A program made the translations under genes and the position numbers. The notes below the pieces were generated by a model. The model was not told the DNA's origin, did not search any database, and saw only the letters and a program-made list of their open reading frames with translations. From Trichosphaerium sp. ATCC 40318 (lineage: Eukaryota; Protista; Tubulinea), in contig JALMLS010000168.1 in assembly GCA_038496445.1 (NCBI GenBank), positions 7,879-71,878 on the forward strand: a DNA stretch of 64,000 nt, in the 5' to 3' direction. Position 1 is the stretch's first letter. The number at the start of each line of letters is the position of its first letter. Shown here piece by piece: positions 5,235-28,756 of the stretch.

Positions 5235-8200
5235 ATGATAAAGCCGCAACTCGTCATAGGCGCTGTACTTGTTTTATGCACCCTTTTCCAGGTCGCCACG
5301 TATGAAAAGCTTTCCGTTTTATCTAAAGTAGTTTCTCAAGCTTTTACTTAGCTCTCAAATCACAGTACCGTTCCCAGAGTATCCAGACTCATTCTCTGTT
5401 GGTGTTGAGATAGTAGATCTACAAGAGTCAACTACTCAAGCCGTCTACGAAGTGTTTGGTATGTAACAGAGCCGAAAAGCAAAAACCAATTGTTTTTCTG
5501 GTTTTTTGGGTTTATCACGTGATAGCGCGATATTCCACCTTACCTACGTCTGACTGTTCTGTTTTTAGACTTTCCAAACCAAAGAGAGTACTACCAATCT
5601 ACAACAAGTTTTGGTACCTTTAAAATTATAAAAAATTACGCAACGGTATGTAGTATAGTATATTATTATATTATTCGATAGCGCGCTTTTTTTAATCTTA
5701 TTTTACTTTTTAGAATGAAGCATACACAATACGTGACCACACGACTTGTACGGTTCAAGACGTACGTCAGTTAGAGGGAGATGAGAACGCCAAGATGAGA
5801 ACGGTGGAAGAGCTATTTCTCTTTGGTCTTGATGCTGTACGATAAAACTTTTTCAAAAACGGTTTCGGTTTTTTTCTGATAATATTCGCTAGGACGTACC
5901 AGCAATTTATGTACCTGGCTTCGATTTTGTAAGAGGGATCCCTGCAAATGTGTTCAAAAGAACCGGTAATTCTACCGTTGATGGTGAGCTAGTAGAGATG
6001 CTTGATATCACATACTACTTTCCTAGACCAGACGAAAATTGGTAACCAACAAAGTTTTTTTGCTTTTCTTTTCACATATTTCTCCCGGTTTACTCACTTT
6101 AATTTCAGGCAATATTACCACAGCGATAACTTTACGCTACCACTGAAGTATGGTTCTTTTGCTTTTCACTTTACCCGCTTTATCTAGAATTCATAACAGA
6201 CCTAATGGTTTTTTTTAGAGTAGAAGTTGATACTCACGACGGAGACGCATACGCTGACGCAACCGAGTATAATTTTTTTGGGGCCACACTCAGAGTAGAT
6301 GATTTTGATTTTCAGGTACTTAGTTTATAAGGCGTACACGGTTTATCGCGTGTTTCAAGTAAAAAAAAAATCACGTGTTCATTCGAGTTTATTTTTGTTA
6401 CAGATTGACGATAGGCTCGATTGTGGATCTCTCCAAACAAGAGAATTACCAACAATACCTCTCCAATGGTCTGCCACGATTGAAATTACCGATTTCGTTG
6501 CCAACACAACTCAGACCCTAAGTACGTCCGGGACAACAATTTTTGTTTGAAAATATTGTACGTAAGCACGTGATTAATTTATTTTTACGCTAGCTGAACA
6601 TTACGACTATGGCGCAAATGTGTTTATGTTTGAGTGGCATATGAACCCATCCGCTGACTATACTCAGATATTCCGCTTAGATAAGGTGCGTACCAAGCGC
6701 AGCACGTAGTTATTGAAGTGACCCTGCTGTTTCAACTACGCACTCTACAAATGGTTGTTCTAACTTGTTTGTCGTAGGGTGCTACTATCAGTCTTACAAG
6801 AACTGAAAATGATCACCTTTGTAAGATATCCAAGCTGGATGGCGCTGGTCTTGATATAACCAATCATACCTACCATCTCAAGACCTCTGCAGACTTGTGG
6901 CGGTTTGGAGAGTACAAAAACTCTTTTCATCTTCTGTTATGTTAAATATTTATGTAGGACATATGGTGAAGAGTACCAAGGTATGACTACTGTCAGAGGC
7001 AGAGACGTACATTATTGGAAGTCCTCCCCACCTGTACAAATCAGAAAACAAATCCAGTTTTATTTTTTTTGCTGTTGGCTCTTTTTTTGACTTCGTTCTC
7101 ATGTCTTTAGATACGCACTGACAGAAATGGCGAGATTGATGTTGTAAGTTACTTCTACTTCCTTGCAGAGCCTTGGTCCATCGGATACGTATTCCCAAAT
7201 GGAACTGCTATTTCTGAAGCACAAGAAGTGCCTGTAAGGTATTCATTTTTATGTCAATCAAAAACTGACCATGCCTCTTCTCTTTCCTGACTCAAAGAGG
7301 TTTTTAAAGCACCTTTGGTGTACTTGTTACTCTTCGGCGTAATTATTTTTTATCGGATGAATTATTTAGTGATACCTTGAAAACTCTTTACTACTCAATT
7401 CTTTGGATGTTGGAATAATTCTGTTTTTTTTAGAGTTGATATACAAGGACGGCGTAGAGAACCTGCTGGCATTTGGGAACCTATGCATATCGTTTATGAC
7501 GTAATTAACTTCTTACCATGGTCAGGAGAAAAAACACACCTCTTCCAGACACCTGATGACTTAGAATGCGAATTCCAAGACTCTCTATCGTGTATGTTGC
7601 CTGTCCTTGTTCTTAAACTCATTAAAACTAACAACTTTATCATAGTCTCATGCTTACCTGGTTGCGGACAAAATGGTGTTTGCCAAATTGATAAATGTCA
7701 TTGTAACCCTGGGTACACTGGAGATTTCTGCCAACTGCTAGAAATCCCAGTACAAACCACTCCTCCTTCACGTATGTCGATTTAATTTATCTATTTTTTT
7801 TATTTAAATGTTACTGTGATGATCAACCCTCTTTCACGTGAATTTGTCACGTGTTAGAAGAACTTGTTGGCTCATAAGAGCTGGGTTGTTGAGATATTTT
7901 TGCAAGTGTAGCGAGTGGATTTTTTTGTTGACTTGCTGTTTAGTAGCAAGCACAAGTGAAGTAACAAATATTTCATGCAAGGGCCATACTGGAGCTATTA
8001 TTGCACTTGTTCTATTCTTAATATTCTTTGTTATTATCGCTACAATGGCTTGCTGCGTTCTATGGAGATTGAGAAGGAGATTGAGAATAAAGTACGAATA
8101 GCTTCGTTTTTACTTTCTTTGTTACTAACACATCAAAGGGGAAAATCTAGTGCTTCTGCTTCTCCTGCTAAAGAAGATAAAGAAATGCATGTTGTTGTTG

Positions 8201-18247: not shown

Positions 18248-19525
18248 TCAGACAATGTTTCTCCATTCAAGGAAATGCGTCGGAGACATATCTATTATCA
18301 CGCCTCTTTTGTTAAGAGCATCTCTACAGTCGTATGTTATACCATCATAATTCACATAGAGTCTACGCAAGTTAACCAGTGATTCAATAACTTTACTCGA
18401 AATACTCGATTCACTAATATCTATTTCTCTGACACTATCAGCAATTGGTTCAAGCCACTCATCTGTTGCATATGTACTTGATAAATAAATGGTTTCAACG
18501 CCTTTGAGACTCTCCATACATGTTCCTGTAATATTTCTACAGTGATCTAGGTTGATGTGTTTCACACCAGAGAGTAGAATAATCCAATCATCTGTTGCGT
18601 TTGTGTAAGATAAATCAATGGTTTCAACACCCTTGAGACACTTCATACAAGATGATGTGAGAGATTTACACCCCATCAGGTCAATTAGTTTCACACCAGA
18701 GAGTGGAGTAATCCAATCATGTGTTGCGTTCAAAAAGGCTAAATTAATGTACCTGACACCAACAAGATCTTTCATACATGTTCCAGTTAACCGACATGCA
18801 ACCAGTTGAATATTTTTTACACCCTTCAAGCTTGATACTCCTGAGTCTGTAACGTTACAATTAGTCAAATCTATTGAGTGTACACCAGCCAAGGCTGAGA
18901 CACCCTTGTCCGTGATTCGTGTAAGAGACAAATCTATGGTATGTACACCAGCCAATGCTGAAACTCCTTCGTCAGTGATGTGCTTACAGCCATGTAAATA
19001 AATACTGTGTATGCCGGCTAACATATACAACACATTGTCAGTAACCTTACAAGTGTCTAGGCTGATTCTTGGTATGCCGACCAACGCTTTAATGCCATCA
19101 TCTGTTACTTGTGGGAGGTAATTCAGTGAGATATATTTGAGGTGTTTTGAAGGTTGGTCTCCACAAAAATTCTTCAACCCATCATCTGTGATGTGCTTGG
19201 TCTCAAAAAGTGAGAGCGAGGCGACACCAGAAAGCATAGCTAGGTCTTCGTCTGTTCCACCTTCCCAAAGCTCAATTTCAGTGTTTTTCAGGAGCGGACT
19301 TCCTGAAATGAGCGAACAGCTCTCGCTGGATTGAACGTAGATTTTATCGTAGCCAACATGATGGTGAATGACGTCTGATAAACGTGTACAGCTTTCAGAA
19401 ACGAGAAATCGATCAGAACGGCCAACATACGATAATAAATGAGCGATTATCTCTGTTGGTATGTCTAATAGCGTAGTTTTGTCGCTAGGCTTTAAATGTC
19501 TCGTGTTTGCTTCTCTAGAAAGCAT
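18248..19525 (-). CDS. Intronless F-box / leucine-rich repeat protein
   Basis: F-box 'LLDIPTEIIAHLLSYV...' followed by about 13 repeats of type 'ITDEGVSALAGVHTIDLS'. First ATG at 19525. Confidence 0.9.
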   Translation of the reverse strand: MLSREANTRHLKPSDKTTLLDIPTEIIAHLLSYVGRSDRFLVSESCTRLSDVIHHHVGYDKIYVQSSESCSLISGSPLLKNTEIELWEGGTDEDLAMLSGVASLSLFETKHITDDGLKNFCGDQPSKHLKYISLNYLPQVTDDGIKALVGIPRISLDTCKVTDNVLYMLAGIHSIYLHGCKHITDEGVSALAGVHTIDLSLTRITDKGVSALAGVHSIDLTNCNVTDSGVSSLKGVKNIQLVACRLTGTCMKDLVGVRYINLAFLNATHDWITPLSGVKLIDLMGCKSLTSSCMKCLKGVETIDLSYTNATDDWIILLSGVKHINLDHCRNITGTCMESLKGVETIYLSSTYATDEWLEPIADSVREIDISESSISSKVIESLVNLRRLYVNYDGITYDCRDALNKRGVIIDMSPTHFLEWRNIV

Positions 19526-20030
19526 TATGTTGAGGTATTTGGCAATTGCTGTCAACCTTACTTAATAAAACGCACTTAAACAAAATAAGCTACAGCTACA
19601 CGTGACACATCAACATATCGCAACACAGTGTACTTATGAAAATAGCGGTAGGGTGTCTATCAAAAAAGCTTTCTGATACGCTACACGTGACAAATTCAAT
19701 TTCAACAAAGATAAAAGTGGCTTGTTACTTTATTAAACATATGTACTCCACGTGTGAAGCTCATGTTTCTCGCTTACTTTGTGTTATTATTAGCGTATTC
19801 GTTTGTTAGAAACCTTTATTGCATTCTTCTACATCTGTTATACGTATTGCAAGGGAGAAGAAGCTCTTGTTAAAGCAAGGTGAGAAAGCTGAAACAAGTG
19901 TCCTCACAACATTTTATTTACAGTTTTGGTACAGGGGCCATACAACAAAAGACAAATATGTAACTTTTACAGTAGCTTCCTAACAGTTTAGGATTGAGCC
20001 ATTTGAATAAACCGTTGCTCTAGGTTTGTT

Positions 20031-21311
20031 TTAAGCACTATCAGCAACAATATTATCTATGAATCCATGAAAATTACAAGAAGCCACAAGCAGCAAGATG
20101 TCCACATCAACTTCAGGTCCACAGAAATCGGCCTCTTCTTCTCCTCCACTATCTTCATTACAACGAAGTGTTAGGATGTTACTTATAATAAACGGACGCC
20201 AATTACTAACTCCTGAGAGGCAAGCAAAGTTAGTAATTACAGCAAAAGACTGGGACAAATCCTCTTGGCAATGAGGTTGTGGACTTACCTGTGATGATAC
20301 CTAGTTCTCCTAGTTGTGCAACAAAAGCAAGGGTTCCTGTTTGATTTCTTTCTTCAAAGTAAGCGCATTTGTTCTGGGCTGTTCCATCAATGAAACACTT
20401 TACAAAACGTCCAGCTGGCATTTGTGTATCCGACAAATTTGTAGTTGTCCATCCACTACACTTTTTAGCTGCCATTCTTAACGCCTCTGCAAAGGCCTTT
20501 ACACTATCCATTGAACATGCAACCACTTGATCGCCCAAGTAGTTTGGTACACCAATAGTATCTTCATTAAATTTGTCAAATAAACGTGACACAAATGTTG
20601 ACATATCTCCTTCAAATACAGAGTATAGCTTTTCCCAGTTGATTTTAAATGGCTTATACTTTGCAAGCTCTCCAGAGATTAGTGCCTCAGCTTTCGCTTT
20701 TGCCAACGGAAAATCTGATAACAGTGTTGTGAGGAGAAGTGAAATACGATCTCTTGGAAGTGATGCAATTTTATCCTCCAGAGACATATTCGCTGTATCA
20801 GGTTCACCAAATGCCATAGGCTCTGATACATCTTCGTAAGCTACCCTTAATGATATCGTGAGCTATGAAGAAGAACACCGGAGTGAGAAAACGTACGTTT
20901 CACCAATAGATACAAAATGATTCGAAGAAACACTCGCAAATACTTGTATTGTAGACCAGTCAGTATGACTATCGAGATATCCTCTAGCACCATCTGAATA
21001 GTATAAACTTTGAGAGTCATAAGCCAGTAGAATCATCTCAGGTCTTTCAGAAATTTAGTCAGTTTTCGCTTGTTTTGTGCTGGTAAAGACTTACCCGAGT
21101 ATTTCATCTTGTCTTACTTGTCGAAAGTATGCAGTGCTTTTATTTGTATTACTATACTACAACAATGGTTAGTGTTGGTGAGGTTTTCATGAAAAATGGA
21201 CACCTTAGACACAATTTCTTCGATAGTACCGTTTTCGGATACTTCTACGCGTGGAAACCTTTGTGGGTTGATTTTGGTGTATTGTGTTGCTTTCTTGCGT
21301 GGTTCTTCCAT
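20031..21311 (-). CDS. Hypothetical protein (~360 aa), 5 exons
   Basis: GT-AG splicing joins ORFs 21114-21311, 20230-20817 and 20031-20258 into one frame. Confidence 0.7.
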
Positions 21312-22905: not shown

Positions 22906-23472
22906 AGCATGTTGGTAGACAAATGATGAAAACCCGCAGTGGCGTAGAACGGCAGCCCTGTAAAATGTCACTTTACAATAAGGAGTTGGTCTAGTAGAAT
23001 AGATATACTCTTGGCTGCTTACCATTTGCTCTGAACTTGCTATAACAAACTAAAAGAAAAATAAACTTGTAATGTAGTATAAGGTTTGTGATAGCTACAC
23101 TGACTACATGTCCTAGCCTAATACTACAAATTCTGCTTCAATATGACATTTTTAAACAGTATGCCATTTCTGCTTAGTGCATTAAATAGACTGACTTGTT
23201 GCACTTCTTGTTTAGAAGCATGCAACAAAAAATTTCGAGAATTCACGAGAAATACCTTTCGGGAATGTTGGGCAAAAAAAACTACACAAAAGTCGCTCTT
23301 TCTGTGATTTCAGGCGTTATTAATTTGCTTTTTCGGGTTTACACCATATAACGTTACTACTATATTTAACGTTAGAAACTACTGCGTACAAATTTTTGGC
23401 GGTTTGTATCACGTGATACAGTATTTTTATTTCAAGATAAACGTAACATAAAAACAAGGTTCGCAGTATATA

Positions 23473-26400
23473 ATGGCTGCTGAACCAACTGCTGAGGTCC
23501 TATTTCAACTAAAACCTGTACCTCTTCAACAAAAGAAAGGTATAGTACAAGAACTAGATCTAGTACGCTTTAATTAGTACTAATAAACAAAAAAGGACGA
23601 AGTAAACGTGAAAATATACTGGTTGAGATACTTGAAACAGAAGTAACATACGTAAACAATCTTATTGTAGCGCTGGAGGTACGTAAAGGACTTTTCCAAC
23701 ACAAGTGTTCGATAGCGTCAATTTTGATTATGGAGAAAAATCATTTTAATGTTTTTGCAAGCACGTGACGCAGGTGTAACCAAACTGAACGTTTTTTTGT
23801 CTTTTTCGTTTTAACTCTACTGAAGGTTTATAAAAAAGCGTTGATACGCGAAAAACGAGTACCCCAGAGCGATGTACGCTGTTTAAAACAATAGACAATT
23901 ACTGAAGATAATTATAAGGTTGACACTATATTTTCACGATTTCTTGATGTTATAGTACAATTGAACAAAAGTCTTGTCGTAGAATTACAAGATACAATGA
24001 TAAAATGGCCTCTTGATGACGAAAATAAGCAATTAATAGGCGAAAAGTTTAGTTATTTTGTACGTAATCACGTGTATAAAATGCGATGATTGTCTTTAAC
24101 ATAAGGAACTAGGTACCTCACTTTAAGAATTATAAGTTTTATGGGACGAATTACGAACGTGCCACTAAATTATTACACAACTACCTTCAAAAGTCATGGT
24201 TTACAGAGATAATGAATGAATGTAATACCACTGCTATGCATCTACTTGGACGTACAAAAGGATTAGGTGACTTGCTCATCACACCTGTTCAGCGTAAGAT
24301 TTCTAACAAACACAAAGTTTATCAAAAAACTAAATTTTTTTTACAGGTGTTCCTCGCTACGAATTACTCCTTAGAGTATGTCAACGCTATACTATCACGT
24401 GATATTTTTTAAAAATAATGTTAAATATCTAAACACTTTTTAGGAGCTTGTAAAGCATACAGACAAGGATCATCCTGATTGTAAAAGTATTTCTTCTGCG
24501 TACAAAGAGACAAAAAAGATTGCGCGATATTTAAATGAAAGTATGGAAAAAGCTAAAGCGGATGAAGCGTGGCGTGATTTATTGACACATAAGGATTATC
24601 TTGTGGTAATTAATAATACAAGTTTACAAAGGCTTCTACTAGAAACTAAACGCTACGTAGATGCTCGCAAGCCCAAGTAGATATTTCGTAAGGTCGGAGA
24701 CCATTTGGCTTCTCCAAGACAATGAAAAAATGAAGACAACATTGTACCTTTTTAATGGTATACATATTGCTCTAACATCATTCGTTTTTTATCCTTAAAA
24801 ATCTGTAGATATGGTAGTTGTTGATGAATTGATTGAAGAACACTCTGACGAAGGATGGCAGGTAAAGATCGAAAATGAAAAAAGGAAAATACAATACTAA
24901 CTGAACAAAAGGTTTATGGAATGAAGCTTGATCTCATGTGGCTTGAGTCTAATCTCACCAAAACTATTACACAAAATAAAGCATACGCAACGATCGACTT
25001 AAATTGCGGCATTGAACTCATTAGCACGTGATAATCACGTGTTATGTCACAACTTACATGTAAACATAGGTCCTGACAAAAGTTGGAAGCTGCTATTTGG
25101 GAACACTGTAAAGCGTCGTAGCTGGATAAAAGCTATTAAAGCTACTGTAAAAAAGAATGTCAGAGTTAAGGTAACAGAAGATGATCCAGGTATGTAGTAA
25201 CATAGACAGAAGTTCAGAAAAAAACAGTATCATGTATTAAGTTTTCTCCAGACGGAAAAAGGCGACAAGGAACGTACACATATTTAGGACCTGTTCATGG
25301 GACATACACTGGGACATTTAACTATGGAATGGTATAGTTTAGAAGTAATTAAATTGTACTAAGTAGTATTTTTTGTAGCTTCACGGACAAGGCCAATTCG
25401 AATCAACGAAAACCGGAATTATGTTTGAAGGATACTGGGATTGCTCTCAACAGGTATAGTTATACCTCAATACCATCTCGCTGAGTGTATTCTAGCTTGG
25501 ATATGGTACTGTAACATATCCAAATGGAAGTAAAGTTCAGGATATGTGTTGGTACAACAAGGTTCCACATAAGAAACCTGATATTCATGCTACTATTGTA
25601 AGTTTGTGGTTTATCCGTTTTTTTACTCACTGACACATTTATCAAGTCTACAAATGTAGAAGTATCGACGGATATAGTAGCGAAGACATTTAGAGGATTA
25701 AAAATAGCAAATAATTCGGAGAAGGTCTTGAAGGAACTCAAAGATAAAGACTGGGAATTGTTATCAGCTGAAAATCCAGAACCACGAGAATTCTTTAGAG
25801 GCACTACACTTTTTTAGCACGTGAAAAACACGTGACTAATAGCTGAAATAGGTCAAGTAATATTAAAAGAAGAGGCTCTTAATATGCATGTGTATCGTAT
25901 ACTCGAAGGAGAAGTAGAAATGTTTATAACTGTTCCAGATAAAATAACAGGAGAACCTGTAAGAAAGGTTCTTGGAACTATATCGTATGTGGCTTTATTA
26001 TACTGAAATTGTACTGATCCTTATATCTATGTAGGGCTCCTCATTCATTTGGCGAGGTTTGCGTATTTAATTACAGAGAAATGCCTGGCGTTATTGCAAA
26101 AACTGATGTGAAATGTAACTTCATATCACTTACTTTTATTTATCGAATGTGCTCTTCAAAACCACGTGCGTTTCCGGATTTCCTCTTTGTGCACCACATT
26201 TATTATTCTTTGTTATCTTACTTCATGTAGATCTTGCAAGACGTTATCATGAGGGTATGGCTCAGATACTAGGTCAACTTCTGCGCACTGCAACATCAGC
26301 AACTTTGTCAAGCATACTTTTGAAAAAAAGAGGTTAGACTTGTCTTTTGTAGCTTGTTTATAACTCTATTTAAGGTCTTGGTAGTCGTAGTAAATCTGAA

Positions 26401-28756
26401 ACTACTAGTAGAGGAAGTATTTTGTTCAAGCGAAACCCTTCTTTGAAGCTAAATATACCAGAAATCGATAACTCAAAGAGATTCCCAAAATTTACGTTCT
26501 TGAAAAAAGGAGAAAAGAAACTACAACGTACGCAGTGCTATGATCCTTTTTTGTTTCCAAAGCTCATGCAGTTGTATACAGAATGGGATTGTTTCCTTGC
26601 AAAAGGATTACGCCTATTTTCTAGCCATGGACAGCGTGTTACTCTGTATTTATTCCAACATCACGTGGCTTATTTGAAAGTTTCGTTTATGAGAGAAACA
26701 TTTGTACGTCAGCTCACGTGGTTTTTTTTTCAACGTAGTTTTTCATACGCATTACTACATATTTTATTACAACAATAACATTAGAATATAGTCTCACATA
26801 CTGAATAAAAGGCTACATTCTGTAGTTAGGGTTTTTTTTTAATGTCAAAAAAACTGTTTGACATTCTTTCTTGGTTCTTCTGCTCTTTGGCTGATGTTTT
26901 TTACAGGAATTCGTTAGCCTAGAAAATATTCTTGACATAAAGCTATTAAACGGAAAGAATGACCAACGTAAAATACTAGAAATCGAATCACCATCCATAA
27001 TGGTAAGTTTCTTTATCAGCCTTTTTTTTTCTCAACTTTGTTTTTCAGATGCATTTCGAGTTTGCCAACATCAAAGAAGGTGAAGAGTGCCGTGACCTTC
27101 TGCACAAGTATGTATTATAAGCAGCGATACTTTTCATTTGACATGAAGCTAAATCTTAATAAAGCATTTGGAACGCGAGACGTCATAGTCTTTCAAAAAG
27201 GCTTGCTAGCTCAATTATTGCAATGACAGATTCAAAGTCATCTTCCAGGAGCTCTCTCAGCCAAAGGTACTAAATCCTAGAAATCTCTTACTTTACTGAA
27301 ACGTATTTTTAGCAGTAGAAGTCTACGAAGCACAAGAGGTACGTTTTAAAGGAAAAGAAAAAAAAGTACAAAAATAACTCTTTTTCAAAGGAACTCACAA
27401 GCCTCACGCATCAATTGGTGACGCCCCTTCAAAATGGTTAGACTTTCACAATAAACAAAAAAAGCGTAGAAAAGGAACCAATATTGGATCAGAAAGAATA
27501 AAGAACGAAGAAACGAAACACGAGCCAAAACAAGAACCTGAAGAAAACCCAGAGAAAAAACAAGAAAAGGTTGAAGTAAAAGATGAAGAAGAAAACATTA
27601 AACTGAACGCAACACCGGAGGACGAAGCAGGTGATATCGACCTACCACCACCTCCAAAAAAAGCTCCACCAGATCCTTTACTTAAGGAAAAACAAATGAA
27701 GCGCTCTGAGGACATAGAGAACCTTAAAAAGCCTGAGGAGAAGGTATCAATTCGTAGAAGTACAGATGATTCTCTATCCATTGCGAAAAGAAAACTAAGC
27801 TCAGGAGAAACCAAGTCAAAGAGTGCTCTATCTCTTCGTAGAGCTAAGTCTATACAACCTCAGTCACCTACAGAACAAAGGAAAAAACCACCAAGAATAA
27901 GAAGAACACGTTCGCAGTCGATGAACGCGAAACCAATGCCAATTCGAAGAAAAAGAAGCAATCCAGCAATCAAGAAAGGCGGAAAACGCTCAGCATCTCA
28001 TCTTGCTTTAAGCACCAAGTCAAGGTCACGACGTAACAGGGAGTTGAGAAATACGGTGGATAATACACAAGACCGAGAGACGGAGAAGAAGCGAGTTAAG
28101 AGGAAATTACCTAGAGCGAAAACAACAGATGACATAAAAAAATTGGCTCATATTGATTCTCTTCTTGGTGATGACTCTGTACGTTTGGAGATCATCTTGG
28201 GTTATGAACTAATATCTACATAGTATTATGATAGCCACTCAAAGTCCGAGCATTTGTATGAGACGATGAATATGACGAAACAAGATTGGGAAATGATTCT
28301 TGATGAATCACCTTACAAGACTTATAAAAAAGGAGATGTTGTACTTGAGTATGGAGCAAATTTAAATCAATTATCTCAAATCACACGTGGTATGTGTAAA
28401 GTATTACGTAAAGATAAAACTCAGATTGGAACGATGGGAGCAGGAGATATATTCGGGTAAACATTTAAAAACAAACTTTTTTGTTGACTTTTTTTAAAAA
28501 GGGATTTGAACTTTCTTCTTGGCACGCCAGCGTCAGCAACAGTTGTAGCATGTGAAGAAAACACTGAGGTAATAATATTAAAGTTGTTTATTAGAAAATT
28601 AAACTGTCTCAGGTACTATCATTGAATGGCATGTGGCTTCAGATTCTATTTGTTAAAAGACCACATTTGGCTGCAAGATTTTACTTTTATATTGCTTCTG
28701 TTTTATTCCGTCGTTTACATCAAAGAAAGGCTTTCACGTACACAACTGACAGATAA
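23473..28756 (+). CDS. RhoGEF (DH)-PH-MORN-cNMP-binding-GRAM-cNMP-binding multidomain protein
   Basis: DH 'KRENILVEILETEVTYVNNL...LGDLLITPVQRVPRYELLLRELVKHTDKDHPD'. PH 'LYLFNDM...ISPDKSWKLLF..RRSWIKAI'. MORN 'YTGTFNYGMLHGQG', 'FEGYW..GYGTVTYPNG'. cNB1 'DWELL..FFRGQVILKE..YRILEGEV..SFGE'. GRAM-like 'WDCFL..TLYLFQHHVAY'. cNB2 'DWEMIL..YKKGDVVL..GDIFGDLNFLLGTPASATVVA..RPHLAARFY'. Confidence 0.88.

Follow-up and report, generated by a model that had tools for sequence, protein, structure and literature searches.

Whether one amoebal polypeptide couples a Rho guanine nucleotide exchange factor (RhoGEF) to a tail of cyclic-nucleotide-binding (cNB) folds, and whether such a tail still senses cyclic nucleotides, is the question raised by a locus of the tubulinean amoeba Trichosphaerium sp. 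ATCC 40318. The locus lies on the forward strand of a window of 64,000 nucleotides (nt), the whole stretch of DNA that was analysed (contig JALMLS010000168.1 of assembly GCA_038496445.1, positions 7,879 to 71,878); all coordinates below are those of the window. An initial annotation read the locus as a cyclic-nucleotide-regulated RhoGEF in which six modules share one spliced frame. The reading preferred here, which is given about an even chance, is that of one gene of 27 exons and 1237 residues that would encode a RhoGEF with a nucleotide-independent regulatory or targeting tail of cNB type.

Domain content of the predicted protein

Database and profile searches were run with single exons as queries, and pairwise alignments were made with the joined, spliced model. 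The DH domain is secure. Three exons match successive parts of the Pfam RhoGEF profile, over profile positions 2-42, 83-140 and 150-180 (E 6e-3, 6e-6 and 9e-4, respectively). Once joined across six introns, residues 20-222 are collinear with a DH-PH open reading frame (ORF) on the environmental contig Ga0314766_1036499 (30% identity over 203 residues, E 1e-21), whose own match to Pfam RhoGEF has an E value of 2e-35. The usual catalytic motifs of Dbl exchange factors are present, namely CR1 (E-T-E-x-x-Y), CR3 (L-L-I-T-P-V-Q-R-V-P-R-Y-x-L-L-L) and the alpha-helix Asn in Y-L-N-E-S, and the locus has the DH domain with CR1-CR3 that is expected of the Dbl family. The environmental ORF is the nearest retrievable relative of this domain and the sole match of a metagenome scan with the DH exon. 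It occupies positions 32-1528 of a 1.6-kb contig and encodes a complete, intron-free DH-PH protein of 498 residues that contains neither cNB nor MORN.

The two cNB domains, cNB1 and cNB2, draw their support from several independent lines of evidence, each modest by itself. Single exons match Pfam cNMP_binding in both domains, with E values of 0.01 for cNB1 and 5e-5 for cNB2, both below the gathering score. In an Atlas feature search with the first cNB2 exon, 27 of the 30 matches are to cNMP_binding (score 0.97). Aligned with the cNB domain of Escherichia coli CRP (NC_000913.3), cNB2 reaches a z score of 6.4, and cNB1 shows no significant similarity (z 1.3). The full-length local alignment of cNB1 with cNB2 scores 71 against 26.9 +/- 4.2 in shuffles and spans the junction at 25801-25851; its z score of 10.4 is slightly favoured by construction, since the similarity of the two domains helped to pick donor 26166 and acceptor 25851. 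Conservation between cNB1 and cNB2 includes the N- and C-helices. The cNB2 exon retrieved no relative in the metagenome scan.

The MORN repeats are probable and are supported at the level of motif and exon periodicity. Two 14-residue cores of the type Y-x-G-x-W/F-x-x-G-x-x-H-G-x-G occur in the protein, against 0.0 per shuffled protein (regular expression, 2000 shuffles). Exon 13, with 75 nt, has the length of one MORN repeat period, and phase-0 introns lie at an equal position in successive repeats. Pfam MORN itself is matched with E 0.48 at best, by one exon.

A PH domain follows nearly every DH domain, and the region downstream of the DH domain is PH-like in pattern, with a stretch L-Y-L-F-N-D-M-V-V-V and a C-terminal Trp helix (R-R-S-W-I-K-A-I). 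Exons 8-11 gave no Pfam match, and this part did not align with the environmental DH-PH protein. Between the two cNB domains, a GRAM-like succession was read by eye, with no statistic attached: C-x-L, G-x-x-x-L-Y-L, L-E-N-I-L-D-I-K, F-E-F and L-L-x-x-I-W. No GRAM domain was found on exon pieces in Pfam or by phmmer in PDB, and Atlas gave no usable match; the four exon pieces compared with PDB returned chance matches only (Myc, HIV reverse transcriptase, AcuB). The sole match of a phmmer search with the 110-residue GRAM-like exon against 1.84 billion representatives is spurious: it is a bacterial-type NACHT/WD40 repeat protein that was matched through short repeats. The frame of the basic linker ahead of cNB2 stays open for 281 codons in DNA of 36% GC, and the linker is probably disordered over its 300 residues. 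The frequency of R-R-x-S/T kinase sites in this linker is not above that expected from composition.

Gene structure and the question of nucleotide sensing

The gene model was traced by hand from the ATG at 23473 through open frames and GT-AG sites, and every version was checked by script (Table 1). The gene had been placed at 23473-28756, and these limits are exact, 23473 being the first position of the ATG and 28756 the last of the TAA. The surrounding DNA is of eukaryotic type, with 33-41% GC and numerous short introns. Within the model, 24 of the 26 introns measure 42-68 nt (the remaining two have 147 and 203 nt), and GC content is 38.1% in exons and 29.7% in introns. Donors are mostly GTA(C/T/A)GT-like, and branch-like CTAAC or CTAAT motifs occur upstream of the AG. 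Around 23859-23918 and 25171-25251 the exon limits are ambiguous, with in-frame alternatives; choices were made by ordinary intron length and by better fit to a homologue or paralogous domain, and the domain content is the same whichever is taken. Shorter introns (20-26 nt and 35-36 nt) were dropped in favour of alternatives of 45-62 nt with better donors and acceptors. Intron 10 can be removed in frame with either a GC or a GT donor, and the GC option yields a beta6-turn-beta7 reading, I-E-L-I-S-P-D-K-S-W-K-L-L-F. No paralogue of the gene model was found by tblastn within the window.

Table 1. Features of the predicted RhoGEF gene (window coordinates; residue limits of domains are approximate)
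Feature	Position	Strand	Residues	Remarks
Whole gene (model 3)	23473-28756	+	1237 in all	27 exons; ATG 23473 to TAA 28754-28756; no internal stop
Exons 1-9	23473-23539, 23596-23678, 23826-23873, 23919-24059, 24113-24293, 24347-24375, 24444-24605, 24661-24757, 24809-24861	+		
Exons 10-18	24912-25023, 25070-25189, 25252-25331, 25379-25453, 25496-25597, 25647-25800, 25852-25984, 26035-26165, 26231-26332	+		
Exons 19-27	26375-26703, 26907-27002, 27049-27107, 27165-27266, 27313-27338, 27391-28178, 28224-28456, 28502-28568, 28613-28756	+		
DH (RhoGEF)	23596-24605	+	~25-222	Exons 2-7; Pfam RhoGEF, alignment with environmental DH-PH ORF, motifs
PH-like region	24661-25189	+	~241-353	Exons 8-11; position after DH and pattern
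Intron 10	25024-25069	+		GC-AG, 46 nt, donor GCACGTG; in-frame GT alternative 25028-25082
MORN repeats	25252-25597	+	~365-438	Exons 12-14; two canonical cores and partial flanking units
Linker and cNB1	25647-26332	+	~451-624	Exons 15-18; Pfam and alignment with cNB2
Intron 15	25801-25851	+		Inside cNB1; in-frame TAG 25815 and TGA 25833; tandem CACGTG pair
cNB1 cassette	26048-26098	+		F-G-E-V-C-V-F-N-Y-R-E-M-P-G-V-I-A
GRAM-like segment	26548-27171	+	~682-787	Parts of exons 19-22; pattern read by eye
Linker	27172-28178	+	~788-1090	Rich in K/S/R/E/P; mostly one 788-nt exon; carries P-P-P-P-K-K-A-P-P-D-P
cNB2	28224-28753	+	~1091-1237	Exons 25-27; Pfam, Atlas, CRP alignment
cNB2 cassette	28452-28550	+		F-G-D-L-N-F-L-L-G-T-P-A-S-A-T-V-V-A; split by intron 28457-28501

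The MORN and cNB halves have no intergenic space between them. MORN exon 14 ends at 25597 and the next coding exon begins at 25647; the GT-AG intron of 49 nt that separates them is in phase and stop-free and leaves no space for a stop, a terminator or a promoter. The critical junction lies 150 nt further downstream, inside cNB1, where the in-frame TAG 25815 and TGA 25833 have to be removed and an exhaustive enumeration of single introns found no GT-AG intron at 25801-25851 that retains the N-terminus of the domain. One in-frame option uses a GC donor at 25801 (GCACTAC, one letter off the GTACTA donor at 27267) together with an AG at 25836, 25842, 25851, 25857, 25869 or 25872, and of these the 51-nt version ending at 25851 fits cNB2 and the beginning of the Pfam profile best. 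Alternatively, a GT-AG intron of 150 nt (25725-25874) keeps the frame and costs cNB1 its helix and first strand. A GCACGTG donor at 25817 was rejected, being out of frame with every AG. Upstream of the junction, D-K-D-W-E-L-L-S-A-E-N-P pairs with the collinear Q-D-W-E-M-I-L-D-E-S-P of cNB2, and this upstream part alone scores 36 against cNB2, a value reached by 20 of 2000 shuffles. Because the upstream helix of cNB1 matches cNB2 collinearly, one domain straddles the break. From its frame and domain layout, the locus is quite probably a single intact gene, part of the small remaining chance being that of errors in the model.

In PKA, Epac and CRP, the cyclic phosphate and the ribose are contacted chiefly by an Arg and a Glu of the phosphate-binding cassette. 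The absence of the canonical Arg from both cassettes, as already noted in the initial annotation, holds: cNB2 reads G-T-P-A-S-A-T-V-V-A, and P-R-[AS]-A-[TS] is absent from cNB1. On pairwise alignment with CRP, cNB2 has Asp for E72 and Ala for R82 and keeps the Ser of S83. The cNB1 cassette retains F-G-E and has E-M-P-G-V where P-R-A-A-T is expected. Neither domain possesses the canonical combination of a Glu and an Arg-[Ser/Thr/Ala] pair, and canonical binding of cyclic AMP (cAMP) or cyclic GMP (cGMP) is unlikely in either of them. Direct gating by cAMP or cGMP is doubtful because the Arg is lost from both cassettes and, in addition, the Glu of cNB2 is replaced by Asp; the proposed 'direct cGMP/cAMP-to-Rac/Rho link' is doubtful on the same grounds.

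Several other readings of the locus have to be weighed against these observations. It is quite unlikely that the locus is something other than one intact gene, that is, either two units or isoforms (DH-PH-MORN ending at TAG 25815, and cNB/GRAM-like/cNB starting from about ATG 25884) or a gene recently broken within cNB1. Such a split is suggested by the in-frame TAG at 25815 and TGA at 25833, which no GT-AG intron removes unless part of cNB1 goes as well, by the in-frame ATG that follows these stops at 25884, and by the tandem CACGTG pair in the gap, another CACGTG being located 58 nt ahead of the start codon at 23473. However, a product from 25884 would start within the beta-barrel of cNB1, the gap ahead of this ATG amounts to merely 66 nt, and comparison with cNB2 makes both sides of the gap one domain. 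The frame can moreover be kept by either a 51-nt GC-AG or a 150-nt GT-AG intron, and CACGTG is over-represented at large, so that the copies found here carry little weight. A tail that is not GbpC/D-like is a somewhat unlikely outcome: GRAM went undetected by exon-wise Pfam, PDB and Atlas searches and by phmmer on the 1.84 billion representatives, but the GRAM-like domain extends across three or four exons, which makes exon-wise scans weak tests, and the joined segment has the GRAM order of hydrophobic and Gly positions (by eye, with no statistic).

A true cyclic-nucleotide-gated RhoGEF would have at least one cNB domain that binds cAMP or cGMP via a non-canonical cassette and thereby relieves the autoinhibition of DH-PH, in the manner of Epac and, as has been proposed, of GbpC. 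The missing Arg, which would pair with the cyclic phosphate, the Asp in place of the ribose-contacting Glu in cNB2 and the lack of significant CRP similarity in cNB1 make this reading unlikely, even though the cNB2 cassette is well kept but for two residues (F-G-x-L-x-x-L-x-G-T-P-x-S-A-T-V-V-A, with the Ser after the Arg position retained), the N- and C-helices shared by cNB1 and cNB2 suggest selection on the fold, and Amoebozoa possess large repertoires of signalling by cyclic nucleotide monophosphates (cNMPs; PMC4758236). That the protein is a real second-messenger-gated activator of Rac/Rho, in which cNB2 would bind a cyclic nucleotide or related small ligand non-canonically and open DH-PH, is quite improbable.

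The reading of the locus as one RhoGEF gene with a nucleotide-independent cNB-type tail has points against it as well. Intron 15 requires the atypical GC donor GCACTAC. The identities of the PH-like region after the DH domain and of the GRAM-like segment between the cNB domains are unproven, as they are assigned by position and eye-read pattern and have no statistical support. An Arg of cNB1 that precedes the canonical site by one or two positions (depending on the alignment) might substitute for the missing residue, and loss of the cassette Arg lowers the affinity for cNMPs but does not by itself prove that binding is absent. No orthologue of the fusion was retrieved by exon-by-exon searches or metagenome scans. 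Of what was initially proposed, the single spliced frame, the DH domain and both cNB domains stand and the MORN repeats are probable at the motif level, whereas PH and GRAM lack statistical support. Likewise, the description as an Alsin-like DH-PH-MORN unit joined to a GbpC/D-like tail survives as a layout, the order DH, PH-like, MORN, cNB, GRAM-like, linker, cNB being the best reading, but with the PH and GRAM identities unproven.

If the preferred reading is correct, the first 350 residues, with their intact Dbl-type DH domain and PH-like region, would promote GTP loading of Rho/Rac-family GTPases; the fold is seen in the sequence and the activity is predicted from it. The roughly three MORN repeats would probably serve in docking to protein or membrane. 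The C-terminal half appears to repeat the layout of the GbpC/GbpD tail, with a cNB domain, a GRAM-like segment and a second cNB domain; in the present protein the second cNB domain is preceded by the basic, probably disordered linker of 300 residues. Both cNB1 and cNB2 would then be cyclic-nucleotide-binding-homology domains that have lost canonical cAMP/cGMP binding, and the tail may act as an intramolecular lid for the DH-PH unit, as a membrane-targeting module, or both. Release of the lid could come from binding of the GRAM-like and MORN parts to the membrane, from modification of the linker or from an unknown ligand.

CACGTG palindromes and neighbouring reading frames

The palindrome CACGTG occurs 66 times in the whole window, against 11.2 +/- 3.3 times in shuffles, frequently as (A)TCACGTGA(T) (looked at in detail over 23410-28389). 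The gene itself contains 11 copies, of which 9 are intronic or sit on a boundary between exon and intron, introns making up 30% of the gene (P = 6e-4). Two introns carry a near-identical element of 21 nt, TTAGCACGTGA-N4-CACGTG, at 25021-25041 and 25814-25834, in which two CACGTG copies stand in tandem 5 nt apart; both elements sit exactly at breaks of the reading frame. A third CACGTG pair, with a gap of 7 nt, is found at 7835-7853. The palindrome serves as splice donor in two ways in the gene model, as a GC donor in G|CACGTG (25024) and as a GT donor in CAC|GTGCGT (26166).

Two ORFs lie upstream of the gene on the minus strand. An intron-free ORF of 435 residues (18248-19555) matches Pfam LRR_6 (E 5e-14, with many leucine-rich repeats) and, weakly, F-box (E 3e-3), and three CACGTG copies (19599, 19684 and 19749) are located at most 200 nt upstream of its start. 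An ATG-initiated ORF of 195 residues (20230-20817) matched no Pfam family. The 2.6 kb between the latter and the start of the RhoGEF gene contain no long ORF.

Relation to known systems

Alsin (ALS2) has the architecture RLD-DH-PH-MORN-VPS9 with eight MORN units. The present gene has the same order of DH, PH-like region and probable MORN repeats, a likeness of arrangement only. It differs from Alsin in that it has no RCC1-like N-terminus (DH begins at residue 25), ends in cNB2 instead of VPS9 and carries roughly three MORN units to Alsin's eight; Pfam exon scans gave no match to RCC1 or VPS9. Epac (RapGEF3-4) is the model of a cNB domain that autoinhibits an exchange factor, and the KCNH channels are the model of cNB folds that still regulate after losing nucleotide binding. 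The regulatory logic envisaged here is comparable to that of the KCNH domains and of autoinhibited Dbl exchange factors. The catalytic or effector domain and the placement of the cNB domain are different in Epac and KCNH, which have neither GRAM nor MORN.

GbpC and GbpD contain two cNB domains with a GRAM domain between them, downstream of a RasGEF domain (PMC11988041; PMC1273635). The present gene shares with them an exchange factor upstream of a tail whose two cNB domains flank a putative membrane-type module, as well as the amoeboid setting, and it has the pair of cNB domains that such a tail calls for. In contrast to the CDC25-type RasGEF/RapGEF of these proteins, its exchange factor is a Dbl-type DH-PH unit for Rho/Rac; no exon matched RasGEF in the Pfam exon scans, and the CDC25-type RasGEF found upstream of the GbpC/GbpD tail is lacking. 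Further differences are the inserted MORN repeats, the basic linker of 300 residues ahead of cNB2 and the loss of the Arg from both cassettes. The likeness to GbpC and GbpD is one of layout, with the identity of GRAM unproven.

A combination of cNB and RhoGEF in one amoebal polypeptide also exists in Physarum, where Phypo_04156 is an uncharacterised cNMP-binding protein with a RhoGEF domain (PMC4758236). There the cNB pair belongs to the PKA regulatory-subunit type, whereas the cNB domains of the present gene are C-terminal, widely spaced and degenerate, and are accompanied by MORN repeats and a GRAM-like segment. The initial claim that no characterised protein joins the two halves agrees with a full-text literature search, which turned up no account of a protein that combines DH-PH(-MORN) with a cNB-GRAM-cNB tail, but its novelty is narrowed by the Physarum protein. 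The gene is most likely a new shuffle of known parts and not a new kind of system.

The degenerate cassettes make the protein a candidate for studying cNB folds after the loss of nucleotide binding. No long-standing question is opened by it. If the second-messenger-gated reading were true, amoebae would have a one-protein route from cNMPs to actin remodelling, which Dictyostelium lacks. If the gene is expressed as one protein, it would show that a cNB tail in the style of GbpC/D is transferable from a Ras/Rap to a Rho/Rac exchange factor, and it would be further evidence that sensor folds of the cyclic-nucleotide type are wired directly to the cytoskeleton in amoebae.

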